From: Piromyces finnis finn
Lineage: Eukaryota; Fungi; Neocallimastigomycota
NCBI GenBank assembly: GCA_002104945.1
Contig: MCFH01000004.1
Coordinates: 1,116,001 to 1,180,000 of the forward strand
DNA: 64,000 nt
Direction: 5' to 3'
In this document: piece by piece, positions 36,148 through 56,536 of the stretch
Layout: the number at the start of each line of letters is the position of its first letter
Numbering within the stretch: position 1 is the first letter of the stretch
Translations under genes and position numbers: made by a program
Notes under the pieces: model-generated
Told to the model about the DNA's origin: nothing
The model's input: only the letters and a program-made list of their open reading frames with translations
Database searches by the model: none

Positions 36148-38382
36148 CAATGTTTAATATTCAATACTTTTATATAATATATTAATTATTAACTAACTCA
36201 TTCATTTATATATTACTATTTTATGGGGAAAATTAATTATTAGTATATTAGGATTACTATTGAAAATAATATCGTTTTTATTACAAATTTAGTAAATATA
36301 ATCACTCTTTTTTAATATATTTAATTATATATGAAAAAAAATATAAAAGTTAATATATTGTGAAATAAATTTTACTATATGAAATATTAATATATTATAA
36401 AATCTCTAATATATTATTTTTAATAGTTTATATTAATATATTTACTTTAATATTAAACTATTAACTTAATAATATAATAAAATATAATCTAATATATTTA
36501 TTTATATTATTTAATTAAATTACTTTATCCTTTCATTAATAAATAATATTAAACAATAAAAATATTATACTACCTTTTTTATAAAAAAAAGATAACGAAA
36601 AAAATAATAAATATAAAATATTATTAATATTTTATTATTTAAATCCTTTAAAGAATTTCATATTAAAAATAACAAGAATATTTATATAAAAATGAAAAGA
36701 AATTAAAGGTTTTACATTAGCAATATATATATAAACTATTATACTTTTTAAATATAAAATGTAATAATGCAATTTATAATATTATTTTATAATTCAAATA
36801 AATGAAATTTTTATGGTTTGTAAACTCCAAAAACATATATGATTGTAAAAAAAAATATGTATTTCTTTATCTACAAATAACCTATTAAATATAAATTTTG
36901 TAAACATAATGTAAACAATAAAAACATTTATGAGGATAACTTTCAAGATATATAACCTAATTCAATAATATTATTATTACCCATATTTGTATAAATTTTG
37001 TAGACAAAGTATATTTAATAATAAATAGTAAAATATATTGATAAATTTATTTTTTATAAATTGAAATTGTTTTAAAAAAGGATTTATTATTTACTTTTTC
37101 ATCCTTTTCATTTTGAATAATATTTATAATTAAATGTTACATCAACTTTCATAATTTACCCAAAACAATATGAGAAATTTATATTAGATAGCCTTTATGA
37201 AAATAAGCGCCCAGGTCTTATAGAGCAATATTATGAACTAAAATACTAAATTGTTTATCTTAATTTTAATAATAGTTAACAAAAAATATTCTAATAAATA
37301 GAATGACAATAATATATTTTTATTTCTTTTATATTTATGGTTTTTTTAATAATTGTGAATAAATGGTGGTGAATTGAGTAATATTAAATATATGAAATGA
37401 AATACCTATCCATTACTTCTTTACATAAATACTCTATTATTTTAATATAATTATTAGAATGTATGATAATTTTAGTATTTTAATCTACTTTTACTTCATT
37501 TTAAAAAAATTTTATATATAAATTAGGCAATCTTCTACACTATTAAAAAGTTGCAATGGTTACTGAAAAAAGTTTAACACAAAAAAACAAATATACAAAA
37601 TTACATAAAGAAAATTAGTATGAATATGTAAAAACATTAATTATTTCTAATGCTAATTGTAAATAAATAAATAATTTATTTTTTAAAGTTTTTTTGATCA
37701 ATCAAATTAATTGGTTAACTATAATTTCATTACACTTTATTGATTGGCTGTTATGATTGGCATCCATCCATATTTGGAACTGTCCTCCAAATAAATTATT
37801 TGGTAAATTATTGGAAATAATTTCTTAATTGAAATTATAATAAATAGAAATTAATAACCGCTAAATTTTTCGAATTATTTAACAGTTATTATTCACCCAT
37901 ATAATTTCACAACATTTATTTATAAAAAGGACTTTATTTTCTTTCTTAATATCTAACATTTAATAAATCAATAATAAAAGTATTAGGATTTTTAGTAATA
38001 TTTCTATTTTTATTAATAATAGCTAATTGAATATATATATATATAAAAAATTTCCGTATATCTGTATAAATATAAATAAAAATGCTTTTTTTTTTCTTAG
38101 ATTAAAATAGTGATAATAGTTTTTATATATATTAATAATTAATAATACAAATGTATATAATTAAAATAAAAAAAATTAAAAAAACTACTTTTTCTTTAGG
38201 ATTATGTATTAAAAAAATGTTATTAAAATTAAAAAAAAAATTATAATTTTTAAGTTTTTAATACTTTTAAATTTTACATATTTTATATATTTATTAATTA
38301 AATCATAAAATAAAAATAAAAGTGATAAATTCATTGGTAAATAATAAAATAAAAATTATTTTTTATCCTTTTATGCAGTTAT

Positions 38383-38644
38383 TATTCCTTAATCAATTTA
38401 AGTGTAAACATTAGGGGGCGGTTGACACGTGATCAAATTGACTATAAGAGGCTTAGCATTGTAGTTGTGAAATATCGTACAACGACATGCATCTAATGTA
38501 CATGGATTAAGTGAGCGTCGAAGCTGAAGAAACAGTATGACAGACCAGGAGGGTCACAACCACCTAGCAATAGGAATGAGCCAACGTTTCTCTAAGAACC
38601 ACCATTGGAGCTAACTCTGATCGATGGGAGAAATGCACTCGGAA

Positions 38645-38686
<42 letters not shown>
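38383..38686 (+). mobile_element. Short non-coding poly(A) retroelement (SINE-like or 5'-truncated LINE relative)
   Basis: GC-richer island ending GTT(A)39, with a 13-bp TSD TTTATGCAGTTAT at 38370-38382 and 38687-38699. It has 38/43 identity to LINE 56010-56052. Confidence 0.8.
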
Positions 38687-38689
<3 letters not shown>

Positions 38690-39364
38690 ATGCAGTTATG
38701 CAGCTAAAAAAAAAAGGATAATAAAATTTTTAAATAATCAATAATTTAATAAATAATATTTATTTTTTTATAGAAAATATTTTAAAACTTTATTTAAAGT
38801 TCGTAATAAAAAAAATAACCAAGATTTTTTTTTTATCATTATTATTAAAAAGTATCTTAAAATATAATTAAAAAAAAATATAGTTTATTAATGTAGAATT
38901 AACCAAAAATTTTAAAATCAAAATATATATTAAAATAAAAAAAAATGTATTTTTTTTTTAATTTAAAATGAAATATTTTAATATAAATTATGAATTATTA
39001 TTATTTAAAAACAAAACTCTAATATTATATAACTATATTTATATAATATATGTTGTTGTACAATTACTATAATTAAATTGTTTATTAAAATAACATTTTT
39101 ACATATCCAATAAAAAAAAAAATGAAATTATTGTTTAATATTACAATAATTTATAATTTAATGTTTGGTAGACCTTAAACATTCCATTCTATTTTAAGAT
39201 TAAATTAAATATTGAGATATTATATAATTTATTAGTAATAATAATAAAATTAAATTACATTTTTTTGAAGAATATTTAAACCAAATAAATTTCTATACTT
39301 TCTTACTCATTATAAAATATAAAATATTATATTTTAATAATTGAATTGTAAATATTATTTAAAA

Positions 39365-48670: not shown

Positions 48671-50173
48671 ATGAAATTTAATTCAATTTTAAAGTTAACT
48701 ACAGCTGTTATTGCTGCTTCTTCAGTTAATGCCTATGAATCTCTTAAGTCAAAGGCCGGTAATTTCAGAATTGGTGTAGCTACTAGTTCTAATAAATTCA
48801 ATAACGCTGGTTACTCTCAAGCTATGGCTAATTTCAACTATATGGTTGCTGAAAATGCATGTAAAATGGTTGGTATTCAACCACAACAAGGAAAGTACGA
48901 TTTTAGCCAATGTGATGCTCACTACAATAAAGCCAAAGAATTAGGAATGGCTTTCCGTGGTCATTGTTTAGTTTGGCACTCTATGCCACCAAGTTGGTTT
49001 GAAAATTTAAAGGGTGATGCATTAAAGAATGCAATGGTAGATCACATTAACAAGACTTTAAAGTATTATGAAGGTAAGATTGATTCCTGGGATGTTGTAA
49101 ATGAAGCTATTGATGATTCTTCCAATGGTCCACAATGGAAGATGCGCCCATCCTTCCTTTATCAAAATATTCCAGATTTCGTTGATCTTGCCTTTAAGAC
49201 AGCTCGTGCTGCTTCTTCAACTACCAAACTTTTCTACAATGATTATAATACTGAAGGTATTTATGGTAAATCTGAAGCTGTATTTAACTTTGTTAAGGAT
49301 ATGAAATCTCGTAATATTCCAATCGATGGTGTTGGTCTTCAATACCACGTTTCTACTCAATCTTTCCCACAATATGAAAAGATTAATGATTTAATTGGTC
49401 GCTACTGTCAACTTGGTTTAGAAGTTCACATTACTGAAATGGATGTTAAGTCTGGAGGTAATGCTAGTGGACAAGCCAAGGTTTACTCTGAAGCCCTTAA
49501 AGCTTGTTTAAGCAACTCATGTTGTAAGGCTTTCTTAGTTTGGGGTGTTGGTGATAACGATAGTTGGTTAGGTGCTAATGAAGCTGGTTTACTTTTCGAT
49601 AGCAATTATCAACCAAAGGCTGCATACAATGCTTTAATTGAAACTTTAGGTGGTGGTGTTCCAGCTGGTAATACTAATTCAGCTCCAGTAATTAATAATA
49701 CACCATCAAATGATGCTCCAGCTAACAATAATCAAGGTGCTAACTTTGATCAAGGTAATCAAGGCGGTAATCCATGGGGTGGTAACCAAGGCGGTAATCC
49801 ATGGGATCAAGGTAACCAAGGCGGTAATCCATGGGGTGGTAACCAAGGTGGTAATCCATGGGGTGGTAACCAAGGTGGTAATCCATGGGATCAAGGTAAC
49901 CAAGGTGGTAATCCATGGGGTGGCAACCAAGGTGGTAATCCATGGGGTGGTAACCAAGGTGGTAATCCATGGGATCAAGGAAACCAAGGTGGTAATCCAT
50001 GGGGTCAATGGGCTGCTCCACCATCTAATTCAGCAGTTGCTTCACCAGATGCCAATAATGGTAATTGTGCTGGACCATGGGCTCAATGCGGTGGTCAAGG
50101 ATTCAATGGTCCAACTTGTTGCCAACAAGGTTCCTGTAAGAAAATCAATGAATACTATTCTCAATGTCAATAA
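48671..50173 (+). CDS. Secreted GH10 endo-xylanase + GGNPW-repeat linker + CBM1, intronless
   Basis: [15 protein letters not shown] (acid/base Glu), [16 protein letters not shown] and VHITEMDV (nucleophile Glu) motifs, plus a C-terminal CBM1. Confidence 0.95.
49748..50002 (+). repeat. 9 x (GGNQ or DQGNQ)GGNPW coding repeat
   Basis: Counted from the translation. Confidence 0.95.
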
Positions 50174-50287: not shown

Positions 50288-50635
50288 GTAATATGTATAC
50301 ATAAAACTAAAATTATTATTTTTTACTATCTTTTTAATAAAATTATTAATGATTTAAAAAAAATGACAATGGAGTGTTTAAATACTATTATTTATGTTGT
50401 AAGATTTAGAATTGTGTGATTTGGGATTACTCATTTGAGAGATATGTGTAAGTTTATGAAAAATTTTTTAATGAAATATAAGGATAAGAATTAAAAGAAT
50501 TAAAAAAATATAGCATGGTATGTATACAGTAATATGTATACATAAAACTAAAATTATTATTTTTTACTATCTTTTTAATAAAATTATTAATGATTTAAAA
50601 AAAATGACAATGGAGTGTTTAAATACTATTATTTA
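50288..50635. repeat. Tandem duplication of the LINE target region (A-B-A, with the second B after the LINE at 56382-56511)
   Basis: A = 50288-50394 = 50529-50635 and B = 50395-50524 = 56382-56511. Copies appear identical by eye. Confidence 0.9.
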
Positions 50636-50881
50636 CCTCTTGGGAACGTGCCTTCATTTATTTAATAAATGTAGTTTCTCAAGGGGGTCTACTCATGCTC
50701 ATGGTACTGAGAGAGTAGAAAGAATTAAATCCAAGTATTGCGCAATGGATGCTTGGTGCCCTCTTAGGAATGTGCCTTCATTTATTTAATAAATGTAATT
50801 TCTCAAGGGGGTCTACTCATGCTCATGGTACTGAGAGAGTAGAAAGAATTAAATCCAAGCATTGCGCAATGGATGCTTGGT
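50636..50881 (+). repeat. Two tandem 124-bp-period structured monomers at the LINE 5' end
   Basis: Units start at 50636 and 50760 and differ at 4 positions. Each folds into three hairpins. Confidence 0.9.
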
Positions 50882-51534
50882 TAGTCTTCAAGGGAAAATT
50901 ATTAGGACTAAGCTCATGGTACTGAGCGATTAAAAAACATTTTATTCATCAAATTTAAGTATTTGATGAATAAGTGAATGTTTGATTTTTCAGGTAAGTT
51001 TGTATAGTATTTAATTAGAAGAGTAATACATTTTGTTGCTGTATTTTTTCTTTTATTCATGTATTCATGTAGTACTACTCTTCTCTTGTAAGAATCCAAT
51101 GTAGTCAACTTTAGCATTTGCATTGTACTTTTATATTCATGTAGCTATTGTTGTATTGTTTCTTGTAAGAGACTGATTCACTCTACATCATGTAAAAATA
51201 CTATTCACAAGCTTTCTGGTGTCAACATTCTTGATTCAAATTTTTTACCAATTTAAATATTTAATGAAAAGTAAAGTCAAACAAGTTTAGTGTCAAAAAG
51301 CGATTCGAATTTACTAACAACAAACCAAACTAGAATTTTTAAAGAAAATTTACAACTAGAATTCAAAAAAAGAAACTTTAAACTTTAAACAAAGCATCGT
51401 AACAATTTTTGTACTATCCAGAACTTTTAAGAAGAAAGAGAGAGACAGATTTTTTTTTTTCCATATACGTTATATTTATAATTTTTATTAGTATTTATTT
51501 TATATTCAATATTTTTTAATTAGAATTAATTATC

Positions 51535-54500
51535 ATGTCAGTCCTTTATATTAAAGATAAGAATTATATCAGACGTGGTACCCGGTCTTATGGTATCCCC
51601 TTAGATGATATTCGCTCCTTCTTTATCCGTGGTATTCGATCATGGTCAGTAAATATGCTATGGGAAAAACTTGAGGTTATTCTAGAAGATAAATTTAATT
51701 CAGTTATTAGTGTTAAATATTTTCAAACTTTCAATGATCACTTTTTCTTAGTCAAGGTTCATGGTTCATCAAAAGATTGTATTAAAATCTTACACTTGTT
51801 AAAGAAGAAACTTTCAGTTACCTCAGTTTCCTTTTCAGCTCGTAGTAGAAGGAATCACAAATACACTTTTTCCACTCTCAAACGTAAAATTTTAGTTTCT
51901 AATAAACATCAACATTCTATTCAACAATCATTTCAACAATCAGTTCAACAATCAGTTCAACAATCTCATCAACAATCCGATCTTCAACAAGATCTTCAAC
52001 AAGTTTTCCATCATGAAAATATTCCAGATCTACAGCAAACACAATTTCAATCTCAACATTCAACAATTAATTCTAATAGTTCTATCAACTCTGATAACAG
52101 TTCAATAGTTGATAGTTCTTCAGTTTCACAGCCATCTAGTAATAGTTCTACTTATTCCTCTGATGCATCATCCATTAATAACGATGACTTTAATAATAAT
52201 AATAATAGCAACGATTCTTCCTCATCCAACAAGCCTGATAACTTTTCTTTTTGTCTTAGTTGGAACACCAATGGGTGGAATCACGAAAAGAGAGATAGTA
52301 TCAGCTATTTCACAGCTATTTTCAAACCATTATTTTTATGTTTCCAAGAAACTGGTAATGGTTCTGGATCGAATACAGATTATCCTTGTCGTGTTACTTT
52401 GCGAAACTATAGACACTTTTTCAAGAAAGCTGACGAATCAGTTCCTGGAATGAGAGGTTTATATTTAGGTTTTCACAATTCATGTCAAGCCTCACTTGAA
52501 AACTTCTCTGGAAAGTATATTATTTCTATTTATACTTTTAGTCTCTGGAATAGATTCAAATGCTCGATTGGAAATGTTTATATGCCTCATAGTCATCACA
52601 ACATCTATGTTGATCATGCAAAGTTAGAAGTTCGCTTGTGGTTACAAACTCATTCATCCCATCCATCGATTCTTGTTGGTGATTTTAATATGTCTAAAGT
52701 AAAATTATCCAACTGGTTATCAACTAATGGATTAGGAGATTGGGAAATTCTTCCGCTTAGAGGGTCGACTATCTCTTGGACTCGAGGTGATCAATCTTCC
52801 GACATTGACCATGCTCTTATCAATTCGAAGATGAAAGATCTTATTCACTCAGGATCATTTATAAATAATTTTTATCCAGTATCAGACCATAAGCCACTTC
52901 TTATTAATGGTAAAATTATTCCTATGGAAGATTTTTCTAATGACTTTAATGTTCCTAAGAAAATTCTGAAATGGAATAGAGTAAAATGTATTGAGGAAAA
53001 GGAATCTATTCTCAGTCATAATAAATTCCAAATACTTTCAGCAAAATTCAACGATCCTAATGTTTCAACAGATGAACTTTCCAAAGAGTTTACTTCAACT
53101 GCTTTTTCAATTGCAGACGAGCTCAGTATTACCTCAGCAAATAATGTTATAAAGTCTTCATTTCATATTTCACAACAAATTTTTAATCTTCAAAAAATCA
53201 AAATGAAGTTGTATAAGAGATTTAAAAAAGAAAGAATTTATGATATAGATGAATTTATTAAACGAATTAAAATCTACCGTAAGCTCATTGATTACATCCA
53301 CAAAAGATGTAATGAATTTAGGAAACAAGAATATCTTCATTGGATTAAAACAGGATGTGAGTATATGAAGAGTCATAATCCTAAGAAGGCCTGGAAATGG
53401 ATCAAGAAAACTGCAAAAATTGGAAAAGATTCTTTCTTTATTGCTCAACCAATTAAAAATAAAAATGGAGAATTAGTTGTTGCTACGGAAGAACAACTAG
53501 ATGTGTGGCATGATCATTTCGAAAATCTTGCATCAGACCCAAGTGGTGTAAGTCTTGATTTGGAGCATTGGTATGAAGAACCAACGAATAAACGTTTTTC
53601 ACTTCCTATGCTTGATGAGTGGGATATCAACCAAAATATTAGTATTGATGAAGTCAAGTCAGCTATCCTCACTACTCCAAATTATAAAGCATCAGGTCCG
53701 GATGGTATTCCAATTGAATTTTACAAAGCATTAGTTCCATCAAGTAATGATTCTAATAATGCTACAGATAATAATTCTTCTGGTAATACTACTTCAGATA
53801 ATGATGCTCATGGTTTAAATTTTATTCTTAAATTATTCAACCGTATTTGGGATGGAGATTTCCCCAACTCATGGAATGAATCCAGTATTGTTTCTATTCC
53901 TAAGAAGGGTGATTTGACAGATTGTGATAACTATCGAGGTATATCACTTATCAATAATGGTATTAAGTTGATTTCCAAAATTGTCACCACTAGAATCTCA
54001 GAATATGGTTTAAAGAATAATTTCATTAGACCTGAACAATTTGGTTTTCGAAAAAAGGAAGAAAGTATCAGTCTTTTCATCTCAATCCAAGAAATATGCC
54101 GTAGACGTCAATTAGATAATAAAGAGACATATTTGGCCTTTTTAGATCTCAGGAAAGCATACGATTCAGTCCCAATCGGTAATATTCTCCATAAATTAGA
54201 TTGTTTAGGAATCCGAGGTAAGAGTTTACAATTCATCAAAAATTTATATTTAACATCTAAGGCTAATGTCAAATTAGATGGACAATTCTCGAAATCTTTT
54301 GATGTGAAGAAAGGAGTCCGTCAAGGATGCCCTCTTTCTCCTATTCTCTTTAATCTCTTTATTAATGATATATTTAGAGAGTGCGAAGATCTAGGAGTCA
54401 GTTTAGGTGACACTCGATGCTGTGGTGGACTTTTTGCAGATGATATAGTTATTTGTGCTCCAACAAGAGGATGCTTAAAAAAGATGCTTAGAAGAGTTAA

Positions 54501-56088
54501 TGAATGGGCCTTGTATAATGAAATGGAATTTGGTATCCAGAAATGTTCAACGATGGTGATTCGTCCTGAATCAATAGAAAATCAGATCAAGAGAGATCCA
54601 ACATTTTACTTAGCAGGACAACCCATTCCAACTACTGATTGTTATACTTATCTTGGTGTTCCATTTGATAAGAATCTGTCCCTTAAACCAGTAATTAAAG
54701 TTCTTAATAACAAGGTTTTGAAAGGACTTTTTTCAGTCAGTAAATTCTTAAGAAATCCTAATATTCCTATTCCCTTCAAAAAGCTAGTACTTAACTCACA
54801 AGTGATTAGCAGAGTTTCATACTTTGCACCATTACTTGGATCCAACAAAGCTAGGTCTAGGATTGCTCAGAAGCATGTTAACAAAGGAATACGATGGGTT
54901 GCCGGAGTTCATAAAGCTGTATCGTTTATATCTTTATACTCTATCTCAAAAGATTTGAATATTCCTCCATTGTCAGCCAAATGTGCTTTAGCTCAGGTTA
55001 GATGTTTTAACAAATGGAAAAACTCAAATTGTATTATCTCACACCTTGTCAATTACATTCCTAAATTTAGAAAATACACGTGGTGCAAATCAAGTAGGAC
55101 ACTTGATAAAAAACTAAAGAAACATGGAGATGTTAAAGCAGTTAAAAACTTTTATTGGAAAGATCTCAAAGGGAATTCAATCAAAGCGCAATATTATGAT
55201 GATAATAAATTTAGTGAAACTAAAGATTTTATTAAATTATGTTATGAGTACCCAGAGTTTGCCTATGGCTTCTACTGGCTATTGAAAGCAAGAAGCGGAT
55301 ACAAGTTGGATGCTAGAGTTGCCAAAGCTGCTAAATTTGTTGATCCAGTTTGTCCTAACTACTGTCCATGTTGCAAGTGTGGAGATCAAAGTATTAAACA
55401 TTGGTTATTAGATTGTCCAACATTTAGAGATATCCGTATTAAACATTATGATTCCATAGTCCAGCTATTAAATTTTTTCAGTCAACGTAATTTCAATAGT
55501 CCTATCAATAATAATGAAATTGATAATGTCAGTAGAGATAGCAATAACAGTAATAGTAATAGTAACAATAATAATAATAACAATAGTAATAATAACAATA
55601 GTAATAATAACAATAGTAGTAATAGTAATAATAGAAATAGTAATAATAACAATAGTAGTAATAGAAATAATAATATTAATAATGATAGAAATAGTGAAGA
55701 TAATAATTCTAATTTAGATAGTAATTTAGTTAATGATAGTAATAGTTCTAATAATCCGGTGAATATTAATGTGTATGATTATTCTAGTGTGTGCAGTAAA
55801 ATATTTAAATTCCTTCTTGGGGGAAGAAGTTTTAACAATATTAATTACAATTCAAGGGAATGGAAAGAACTTTGTAAGCGTCAGATTCAATCTGGTACTA
55901 ATGAAGGAGCACCATTCTTGACGGTAAACGCGGAACTTCTAACCAAAATCATGCCTTTTGCTATTGGCCAGCAATGGTCAATGTTCAAAAGGTTTGAAGC
56001 AACATCCAAGAGCGTCAATGCTGAAGAAACAGTAAGACAGGCCAGGAGGGCCAGCGCAACCAATGGAGATCATAATTTTGTTCCATGA
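51535..56088 (+). CDS. LINE polyprotein: putative RRM-like N-terminus, APE endonuclease, reverse transcriptase, CCHC zinc finger
   Basis: APE motifs SWNTNG, FQET, VGDFN, DIDH, SDH. RT motifs GPDGIP, YRGISL, FLDLRKAYDSV, GVRQGCPLSP, LFADD, YLG. Zinc finger C-x2-C-x8-H-x4-C. No stops. Confidence 0.95.
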   Translation: MSVLYIKDKNYIRRGTRSYGIPLDDIRSFFIRGIRSWSVNMLWEKLEVILEDKFNSVISVKYFQTFNDHFFLVKVHGSSKDCIKILHLLKKKLSVTSVSFSARSRRNHKYTFSTLKRKILVSNKHQHSIQQSFQQSVQQSVQQSHQQSDLQQDLQQVFHHENIPDLQQTQFQSQHSTINSNSSINSDNSSIVDSSSVSQPSSNSSTYSSDASSINNDDFNNNNNSNDSSSSNKPDNFSFCLSWNTNGWNHEKRDSISYFTAIFKPLFLCFQETGNGSGSNTDYPCRVTLRNYRHFFKKADESVPGMRGLYLGFHNSCQASLENFSGKYIISIYTFSLWNRFKCSIGNVYMPHSHHNIYVDHAKLEVRLWLQTHSSHPSILVGDFNMSKVKLSNWLSTNGLGDWEILPLRGSTISWTRGDQSSDIDHALINSKMKDLIHSGSFINNFYPVSDHKPLLINGKIIPMEDFSNDFNVPKKILKWNRVKCIEEKESILSHNKFQILSAKFNDPNVSTDELSKEFTSTAFSIADELSITSANNVIKSSFHISQQIFNLQKIKMKLYKRFKKERIYDIDEFIKRIKIYRKLIDYIHKRCNEFRKQEYLHWIKTGCEYMKSHNPKKAWKWIKKTAKIGKDSFFIAQPIKNKNGELVVATEEQLDVWHDHFENLASDPSGVSLDLEHWYEEPTNKRFSLPMLDEWDINQNISIDEVKSAILTTPNYKASGPDGIPIEFYKALVPSSNDSNNATDNNSSGNTTSDNDAHGLNFILKLFNRIWDGDFPNSWNESSIVSIPKKGDLTDCDNYRGISLINNGIKLISKIVTTRISEYGLKNNFIRPEQFGFRKKEESISLFISIQEICRRRQLDNKETYLAFLDLRKAYDSVPIGNILHKLDCLGIRGKSLQFIKNLYLTSKANVKLDGQFSKSFDVKKGVRQGCPLSPILFNLFINDIFRECEDLGVSLGDTRCCGGLFADDIVICAPTRGCLKKMLRRVNEWALYNEMEFGIQKCSTMVIRPESIENQIKRDPTFYLAGQPIPTTDCYTYLGVPFDKNLSLKPVIKVLNNKVLKGLFSVSKFLRNPNIPIPFKKLVLNSQVISRVSYFAPLLGSNKARSRIAQKHVNKGIRWVAGVHKAVSFISLYSISKDLNIPPLSAKCALAQVRCFNKWKNSNCIISHLVNYIPKFRKYTWCKSSRTLDKKLKKHGDVKAVKNFYWKDLKGNSIKAQYYDDNKFSETKDFIKLCYEYPEFAYGFYWLLKARSGYKLDARVAKAAKFVDPVCPNYCPCCKCGDQSIKHWLLDCPTFRDIRIKHYDSIVQLLNFFSQRNFNSPINNNEIDNVSRDSNNSNSNSNNNNNNNSNNNNSNNNNSSNSNNRNSNNNNSSNRNNNINNDRNSEDNNSNLDSNLVNDSNSSNNPVNINVYDYSSVCSKIFKFLLGGRSFNNINYNSREWKELCKRQIQSGTNEGAPFLTVNAELLTKIMPFAIGQQWSMFKRFEATSKSVNAEETVRQARRASATNGDHNFVP

Positions 56089-56324
56089 CAAAATTTTGAT
56101 CTTTGGCTCGGTGTCCCATTGGAAGTCAAATACAATTATTATACTTTAGTATGATAGTGGCTTTCTTACTTTAATTAAAATTACTAGAATACATTATACC
56201 CAATTTTTATTCATTTGTGTTTATTTAAACATATTTTTTTTTTATTTTTATTTATTTTTAATTTTTTATTACATGTATTATAATTTTAATTAAATTAATA
56301 ATAAAGTTTAAAATATTTGATGCC

Positions 56325-56372
<48 letters not shown>

Positions 56373-56536
56373 TATTATTTATGTTGTAAGATTTAGAATT
56401 GTGTGATTTGGGATTACTCATTTGAGAGATATGTGTAAGTTTATGAAAAATTTTTTAATGAAATATAAGGATAAGAATTAAAAGAATTAAAAAAATATAG
56501 CATGGTATGTAATATTTAGAAAAAATATAAAAATAA

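Follow-up and report, generated by a model that had tools for sequence, protein, structure and literature searches.

The 64,000-nt stretch of the Piromyces finnis genome analyzed here (contig MCFH01000004.1, positions 1,116,001 to 1,180,000; hereafter the window) carries, at 38383-38647 and followed by 39 A residues, a recent 5′-truncated insertion of a 535-nt non-coding, poly(A)-tailed short interspersed element (SINE). The same window contains a full-length L1-like long interspersed element (LINE), and the two have in common an internal module of ~50 nt that folds into two hairpins and that, across LINE lineages, appears to be maintained as RNA structure. The explanation that best accounts for our findings as a whole, and which we consider probable, is that the truncated SINE insertion was copied by the resident L1-like LINE, with the shared module as the likely mark of a template.

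A recent, 5′-truncated SINE insertion

The insertion and its immediate surroundings comprise the following features.

38370-38382, + strand: left target-site duplication, TTTATGCAGTTAT (direct read)
38383-38647, + strand: 5′-truncated SINE copy, 265 nt, equivalent to nt 271-535 of the 535-nt consensus (comparison with genomic copies)
38513-38555, + strand: LINE-like module in the SINE, 43 nt (38/43 identity to the LINE, fold and covariation)
38517-38541, + strand: SINE hairpin 1 (minimum-energy fold)
38543-38555, + strand: SINE hairpin 2 (minimum-energy fold)
38563-38574, + strand: CCTA-GCAA-TAGG mini-hairpin, 3′ of a CAACCA spacer (predicted in the fold of 38500-38647)
38648-38686, + strand: poly(A), 39 A (direct read)
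38687-38699, + strand: right target-site duplication, TTTATGCAGTTAT (direct read)

An earlier note on this DNA had described 265 nt plus (A)39 between perfect 13-bp target-site duplications, and direct reading of the sequence confirmed these coordinates. The 265 nt are richer in G+C than the flanking DNA, which has ~18-22% G+C. The note had also taken the 265 nt to be the element itself; instead, they are the 3′ half of a 535-nt SINE, since other copies run 270 nt further upstream. Searching the genome (56,455,805 bases in 232 contigs) gave 843 first-look candidates for the family, of which 40 were scored; 30 copies, namely the window copy and 29 others, were read, with L002:1231-1765 as the reference full-length copy. 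Identical sequence continues directly 5′ of the window copy's first base in 29/29 of the other copies, and in most of them homology reaches 270 nt upstream to one shared 5′ end, which starts GTCGTTCCAG. Twenty-five of the 30 copies begin at consensus nt 1-2, and the five truncated copies start at nt 12, 19, 61, 187 and 271, the last being the window copy. When the full SINE is compared with the window using BLASTN, the alignment begins at 38380, and the last 2-3 bases of TTTATGCAGTTAT are the same as SINE nt 268-270, a microhomology at the truncation point.

It is extremely improbable that the 265 nt constitute an entire non-autonomous element, simply lacking a head, or, as the earlier note had proposed as an alternative, the 3′ end of a sister LINE. 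The window copy taken by itself, with its clean target duplications and no head, would fit such a reading, but the 29 other copies continue upstream identically, 25/30 reach the fixed terminus 270 nt further on, copies do not cluster at an nt 271 start, and the additional 270 nt are non-coding and contain a B box. The note had suggested examining copies for their number and for uniform 5′ ends, and had regarded ragged ends extending into a coding LINE as the sign of simple LINE truncation. Many copies and a uniform 5′ end were found, although that end lies 270 nt upstream of the start originally claimed, and the raggedness that exists is ordinary SINE truncation (5/30), with no copy extending into a coding LINE. 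The statement that there is no tRNA head holds for the window copy, but solely as a result of its 5′ truncation.

The unit is classed as a SINE because it is 535 nt long, non-coding (the longest open reading frame [ORF] wholly within it is 38 aa) and has a uniform 5′ end, poly(A) and target duplications. It has 41.7% G+C and contains no AATAAA. Target duplications of ~8-17 bp were detected for 27/30 copies using a lenient matcher, and the tails range from 8 to 132 A; together with the occasional 5′ truncation, these duplications and 3′ A tails are hallmarks of target-primed reverse transcription. All 40 scored copies are 100% identical over the part present in the window, which sets a minimum of 40 genomic copies, and exact words were counted genome-wide 193 times (head 26-mer), 146 times (head 36-mer) and 225 times (module 33-mer). 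The head 36-mer, with fewer hits than the family-specific 26-mer, gave no indication in this test of a second SINE family with the same head. The copy number is about 200 or more, dispersed on many contigs, and the short non-coding unit with its defined 5′ end is what is expected of a SINE. The family is abundant and very young and, with its identical copies, looks currently active. The earlier view of the element as a non-coding retroposon with a poly(A) tail, non-autonomous and with the LINE as its partner, is supported.

Some further observations on the family may be recorded here. SINE nt 133-185 (L002:1363-1415) form an AT-rich, intron-like stretch of ~50 nt between GTAAGT and CTAG, and no joint was seen there in contigs. 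At G000:C150:542357-542602, three SINE head words occur on the same strand with 110-nt spacing, which suggests a local tandem array of heads. In L030 (G000:C13:749020-752284), a full-length SINE lies inside a LINE copy, ~180 nt upstream of the host LINE's hairpin module; a simple test revealed no clear target duplication for this insertion.

The likely partner LINE is L1-like and belongs to a young family

The LINE in the window has the following parts.

50622-50635 and 56368-56381: LINE target duplication, AATACTATTATTTA, 14 bp
50636-56369, + strand: full-length L1-like LINE (14-bp duplication and empty-site paralogue)
50636-50881, + strand: 5′ untranslated region (UTR) monomers, two of ~123 nt in tandem, ~97% identity
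51535-56088, + strand: single LINE ORF, 1517 aa (Pfam, structure match and CCHC read)
56010-56052, + strand: LINE module, within the last 26 codons of the ORF
56014-56038, + strand: LINE hairpin 1
56040-56052, + strand: LINE hairpin 2
56328-56369, + strand: LINE poly(A)

The LINE interrupts a 241-nt tandem duplication (50295-50635 and 56368-56508), in which unit 1 (50295-50535) is an intact empty site and unit 2 contains the LINE. Because of this empty-site paralogue 241 nt upstream, the ends of the LINE and its 14-bp duplication are exactly fixed. Its protein contains an APE-type endonuclease domain (Exo_endo_phos, aa 241-452, 2.7e-6 in Pfam) and a reverse transcriptase (RVT_1, aa 788-1043, 1.4e-35 in Pfam), followed at the C terminus by a CCHC motif and a weak zf-RVT match. 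Among solved structures, where the comparison offers only L1 and R2, its closest relatives are those of human LINE-1 ORF2p (1.5e-33), with R2 proteins far behind. There is no separate ORF1; instead, the single ORF begins with 240 uncharacterized residues. In the 3′ UTR, AATAAAG lies ~25 nt ahead of the tail, as it does in relatives from elsewhere. The features of the L1 clade are thus present, namely an APE-type endonuclease, a reverse transcriptase, a C-terminal CCHC motif, an A tail and target duplications, and the element can be described as L1-like by its domains and nearest solved structure.

The LINE family yielded 1391 first-look candidates in the genome. Of these, 131 were scored, and 131/131 are 91-100% identical to the window LINE in amino acid sequence over the last 300 aa, so that at least 131 copies exist. 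The family is very large and young and, with many copies retaining intact ORFs of 1512-1527 aa, looks currently active.

The 5′ monomers are reminiscent of the promoter monomers of mouse L1. Outside the LINE and not part of it, a 500-aa ORF at 48671-50173, ~460 nt upstream, encodes a GH10 xylanase domain and a CBM_1-type module.

The SINE and the LINE share an internal double hairpin

SINE positions 38513-38555 and LINE positions 56010-56052 are identical at 38/43 nt, and BLASTN against the 6-kb LINE extends this match through CAACCA, giving 45/53 identities and a single 3-nt gap (E = 5e-10). Elsewhere in the SINE, BLASTN detected no alignment to the LINE, its 5′ region included. In isolation, both 43-mers adopt the two-hairpin fold, at -10.0 kcal/mol for the SINE (z = -2.1 versus shuffles) and -12.4 kcal/mol for the LINE (z = -2.9). 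One pair in hairpin 2 is A-U in the SINE and G-C in the LINE, a compensatory difference. When the SINE module is read in the LINE frame it contains a TGA stop, yet every base pair is kept.

In these respects our analysis agrees with the earlier note, which had reported the 38/43 match with only CAACCA alignable beyond it, the double-hairpin fold, the compensatory A-U/G-C difference and stops in the LINE-equivalent frame. It had also held that the shared part is internal and not a terminal tail, and in a comparison with 11 LINE lineages, none matched the final 91 nt of the SINE better than shuffles did (p = 0.25 to 0.98). Other claims fared less well. The helices proposed for the remainder of the element are present in the minimum-energy fold; however, 38500-38647 (z = -0.40) and the whole SINE (z = +0.26) fold no more stably than shuffled sequences, which does not bear out a structured remainder. 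The GTT(A)n ending common to both elements is real but trivial; other LINE lineages end differently. Of the two features that characterize SINE/LINE pairs of the stringent type, a shared part that is a conserved stem-loop is present here; a shared 3′-terminal sequence up to the tail is absent, with only the internal ~50-nt block in common.

Two other origins for SINE sequence were considered and rejected. Derivation of the last 91 nt from the LINE 3′ UTR had been suggested by a GGGAGA..AAAT likeness seen by eye, which did not rise above shuffles in the 11 lineages. Similarly, the SINE is not a RIME-like deletion derivative joining LINE 5′ and 3′ sequences, as it has no similarity to the LINE 5′ region.

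In nearly every LINE lineage (L087-L098), a third, longer hairpin follows the double hairpin and a GCAACC spacer, at 56053-56130 in the window LINE. This hairpin has a CC..../....GG base and encloses or abuts the stop codon, and its arms differ between lineages in an apparently compensatory manner (CCAATGG/CCATTGG, CCAATGA/TCATTGG and CCAGTAG/CTACTTGG). The SINE mini-hairpin CCTA-GCAA-TAGG (38563-38574), which occupies the same relative place, may be its counterpart; the two have no significant sequence similarity.

The module is constrained at the RNA level across LINE lineages

In this genome, the module is essentially invariant over 50 LINE copies, with two single substitutions. Since it is near-identical in these copies and in all SINE copies, covariation within the genome is uninformative, and sequences from outside were used. 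Queried with the C-terminal 468 aa of the LINE protein, a word search identified 15 LINE proteins, 40-64% identical, in other assemblies and metagenomes. DNA was used for 12 of the 15, together with 20 metagenome stretches identified by a pattern that constrains hairpin 1 only, and the resulting covariation sets, in which sequences of the window were included, consisted of 14 sequences for both hairpins and 22 distinct sequences for hairpin 2.

Over the 14 sequences, 95.2% of pair cells are standard and three pairs exhibit two-sided changes. Covariation in this set is 0.170, compared with 0.093 ± 0.016 after shuffling (0/500 shuffles reach the observed value) and at most 0.082 when partners are slid. 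For hairpin 2, which is free of pattern bias, the 22 distinct sequences are 93.2% paired, and covariation is 0.464, compared with 0.268 ± 0.037 after shuffling (0/500) and at most 0.222 for slid partners. Pair 32-42 is GC (16), AU (4) or GU (1), and pair 33-41 is CG (16), AU (3), UA (2) or UG (1).

Double changes were placed on a tree that was built from the preceding 80 aa and left out the module itself; this tree is short and has many weak forks. Pair 32-42 changes from GC to AU in L087/L088 and separately in L105/L117, pair 33-41 changes from CG to AU in L094/L108 (and L090) and from CG to UA in L102/L104, and pair 6-28 changes from UA to CG in L093/L095/L097. Counted by separate clades, this amounts to at least five separate compensatory events, a count that is approximate. 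The covarying RNA structure that the earlier note had claimed thus holds in a larger alignment, with 93-95% of pair cells paired over the 22 and 14 sequences.

Could the block instead be conserved for the peptide that it encodes (KSVNAE.TVRQ...), with the hairpins incidental? This peptide is the best conserved stretch of the LINE C-terminal region, as would be expected if selection acted on protein, but we consider this explanation very unlikely. Most of the double changes are non-synonymous at both paired positions (Ala to Thr and Val; Ala to Asp and Ser); in the UA to CG change of pair 6-28, by exception, the 3′ side converts AGA to AGG and is synonymous. In 13 lineages, whose proteins are 31-58% identical to that of the window LINE over the C-terminal stretch, the stem codons ACC AAG AGC GTC AAT GCT and ACA GTA show 100% codon identity where the residue itself is retained, whereas two loop codons vary freely and change the amino acid. 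Conserved residues upstream of the module use several synonymous codons. Moreover, the SINE copy of the module, which is out of frame and contains a stop, retains the pairing. Because paired positions change together non-synonymously, stem codons are frozen and loop codons vary, the constraint is best placed at the level of RNA, and our sequence comparisons point to a module conserved across LINE lineages as RNA structure and not as peptide.

The SINE head contains a B box

The head that is absent from the window copy includes a perfect B-box consensus, GGTTCGACCCC, at SINE nt 59-69. The 64-kb window lacks this consensus altogether, and chance alone would produce none. Transcription by RNA polymerase III, driven by the head, is plausible. 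A tRNA-derived SINE was considered and rejected, as neither ARAGORN at its default setting nor Rfam recognizes the head as a tRNA, and Rfam searches with the window copy and a full copy gave no relevant family match. The head can be described as B-box-bearing, with no match in Rfam to a recognized class of SINE progenitor. By eye, the stretch TGGTTGTTAAGGCG within it recalls the D-loop of long-arm tRNAs.

It could be argued that the family consists of processed pseudogenes of a cellular small RNA and is not a SINE family in the strict sense. Such an origin would be consistent with a head that matches no known progenitor class (tRNA, 5S, 7SL or small nuclear RNA) in Rfam. However, Rfam returned no family for any segment of the element, which, in ~200 or more identical copies, combines a block derived from the LINE with a templated A tail; we therefore give this possibility little weight. 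In practice, such a family would differ from a SINE only by the existence of a functional source gene.

In one sequencing run, word depth is very high over the SINE and zero over the flanks of L002, and one contig from a sequencing run joins the SINE with the flank of copy L021. For both observations, RNA and repeat DNA are inseparable.

DISCUSSION

From the co-occurrence of the two elements, their shared hallmarks and their shared module, we infer that the LINE is the mobilizer of the SINE. The SINE would be copied into the genome by target-primed reverse transcription using the enzymes of the resident L1-like LINE; the A tail, the target duplication of 13 bp and the microhomology at the truncated 5′ end are the traces that such a process leaves. 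The module may serve as a handle for template recognition: the LINE protein would bind these ~50 nt, marking the RNA as a template, and the SINE, having acquired a copy of the module, would compete for the LINE enzyme.

How might an internal module act? Since it is located at the very end of the LINE ORF, loading of the enzyme could be co-translational. One possibility, which we put forward tentatively and regard as somewhat doubtful, is that the module is an internal, coding-overlapping loading site, perhaps in concert with the third hairpin around the stop codon, where the LINE protein grabs its own RNA. Speculatively, the enzyme would seize this RNA as the ribosome finishes translation, resulting in cis preference. 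The loaded enzyme would then reach the distant A tail and prime reverse transcription, and the SINE would succeed by offering the same site in a non-coding RNA.

Several observations weigh against a SINE that is mobilized by an L1-type LINE through this module. All SINE copies that were read are identical, with no sign of selection on the module within the SINE. The module lies 92 nt from the A tail in the SINE and 275 nt from it in the LINE, unlike classical 3′-terminal stems, and the LINE has a normal polyadenylation signal and A tail. Mammalian L1-type enzymes require only an A tail, and thus the module may be dispensable for mobilization. The LINE is assigned to the L1 clade by its domains and its closest solved relative rather than by a phylogeny. 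As for the SINE, there is no good A box, the best match (nt 15-25) agreeing at 6/9 specified bases, and the T runs at nt 11-15 (T5) and nt 91-94 (T4) are potential polymerase III stops. ARAGORN detects no tRNA in the head at its default or at 80-90% thresholds, with only a poor, shifted cloverleaf at 70%, and Rfam searched with the 85-nt head alone returns no tRNA, 5S, 7SL or small nuclear RNA up to E = 10. Finally, the sequencing runs that contain the SINE were served as contigs with the library type unrecorded, and contigs do not show starts, ends or RNA status.

The main rival explanation holds that the SINE carries the module as a passive relic, acquired for example by template switching, and that mobilization occurs via the A tail only, as for Alu by human L1. 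The LINE hairpins would then serve other roles, such as translation termination, RNA stability or export. This explanation fits an L1-like LINE with a poly(A) tail and signal, a module distant from the 3′ end, a SINE whose last 91 nt match no LINE lineage, and identical SINE copies that give no evidence of selection within the SINE. Yet the module is the sole LINE-like stretch kept in what is currently a very successful SINE, and all of its base pairs are kept, one of them via a compensatory change made at the expense of the reading frame. In addition, L1-clade LINEs with a structured element common to SINEs have been documented in plants and a green alga (PMC3472496). As the SINE copies are identical, they cannot by themselves decide between a relic and a handle; on the evidence as a whole, we regard a relic as unlikely.

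If the module does act as the loading site considered above, the pair would exemplify stringent, sequence- and structure-specific template choice at an internal, coding-overlapping site of a poly(A) L1-type LINE, a first for fungi. The candidate recognition element is compact and precisely delimited, with natural compensatory changes in its support. The pair makes it testable whether L1-type enzymes choose templates by the A tail alone or through an RNA handle, and how cis preference originates. The SINE and the LINE are also a large and recent source of insertions in this genome, and gene models of the gut fungi that are used in biotechnology need to have them masked or annotated.

Comparison with known SINE/LINE systems

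Partnerships between SINEs and LINEs that are based on a shared RNA structure are well known, and we found none described for anaerobic gut fungi. Our literature search (subscription journals and Repbase not covered) revealed no report of SINEs or of this LINE in Neocallimastigomycota, consistent with the earlier suggestion that the element was undescribed. The SINEs known from Ascomycota include Mg-SINE in Magnaporthe, Foxy in Fusarium and EGH24-1/Eg-R1 in Blumeria. These are likewise short, non-coding fungal retroposons, some with A-rich tails, although from a different phylum, and we know of none described with a covarying module common to the ORF end of a partner LINE.

With Alu and human L1, the pair shares a non-coding SINE, a templated A tail and target duplications of ~13-15 bp. 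Alu is mobilized in trans by an L1-type enzyme, and the same is proposed here. The differences are that Alu is 7SL-derived and has no sequence in common with L1, whereas the SINE described here contains a LINE-derived structured block and a head of unassigned origin.

The eel pair UnaL2/UnaSINE1 is reportedly of the stringent type (Kajikawa and Okada, 2002). SINEs that borrow a structured 3′ segment from a LINE form the classical stringent type (PMC4176376; reviewed in PMC3747384), and zebrafish ZfL2 represents another such LINE/SINE system (Hayashi et al., 2014, PMC4176376). As in these systems, the proposed recognition element for the LINE protein in Piromyces is a conserved stem-loop of the LINE RNA that has been copied by the SINE. 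However, UnaL2 and ZfL2 belong to the L2 clade, their stems are 3′ terminal and followed by short repeats with no A tail, and their function was shown by experiment.

For L1-clade LINEs, the sharing of a structured segment with SINEs is rare. L1-clade pairs that share a structured 3′ end consist of maize LINE1-1_ZM with ZmSINE2 and ZmSINE3 and a green-algal pair, and it has been proposed that ancestral plant L1s recognized a specific structured 3′ end (Ohshima, 2012, PMC3472496). In these pairs, as in ours, an A-tailed L1-type LINE is accompanied by a non-coding SINE that contains a short, structured, LINE-derived segment, and the pairing suggests stringent recognition in a clade usually deemed relaxed. 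The present segment differs in that it is internal (92 and 275 nt from the A tail), with intervening sequences that are unalignable, in that it overlaps the final codons of the LINE ORF, and in that the host is an early-diverging fungus. To judge from these comparisons, the pair resembles the known L1-clade cases in principle and is set apart by its internal, coding-overlapping module and by the phylum of its host.

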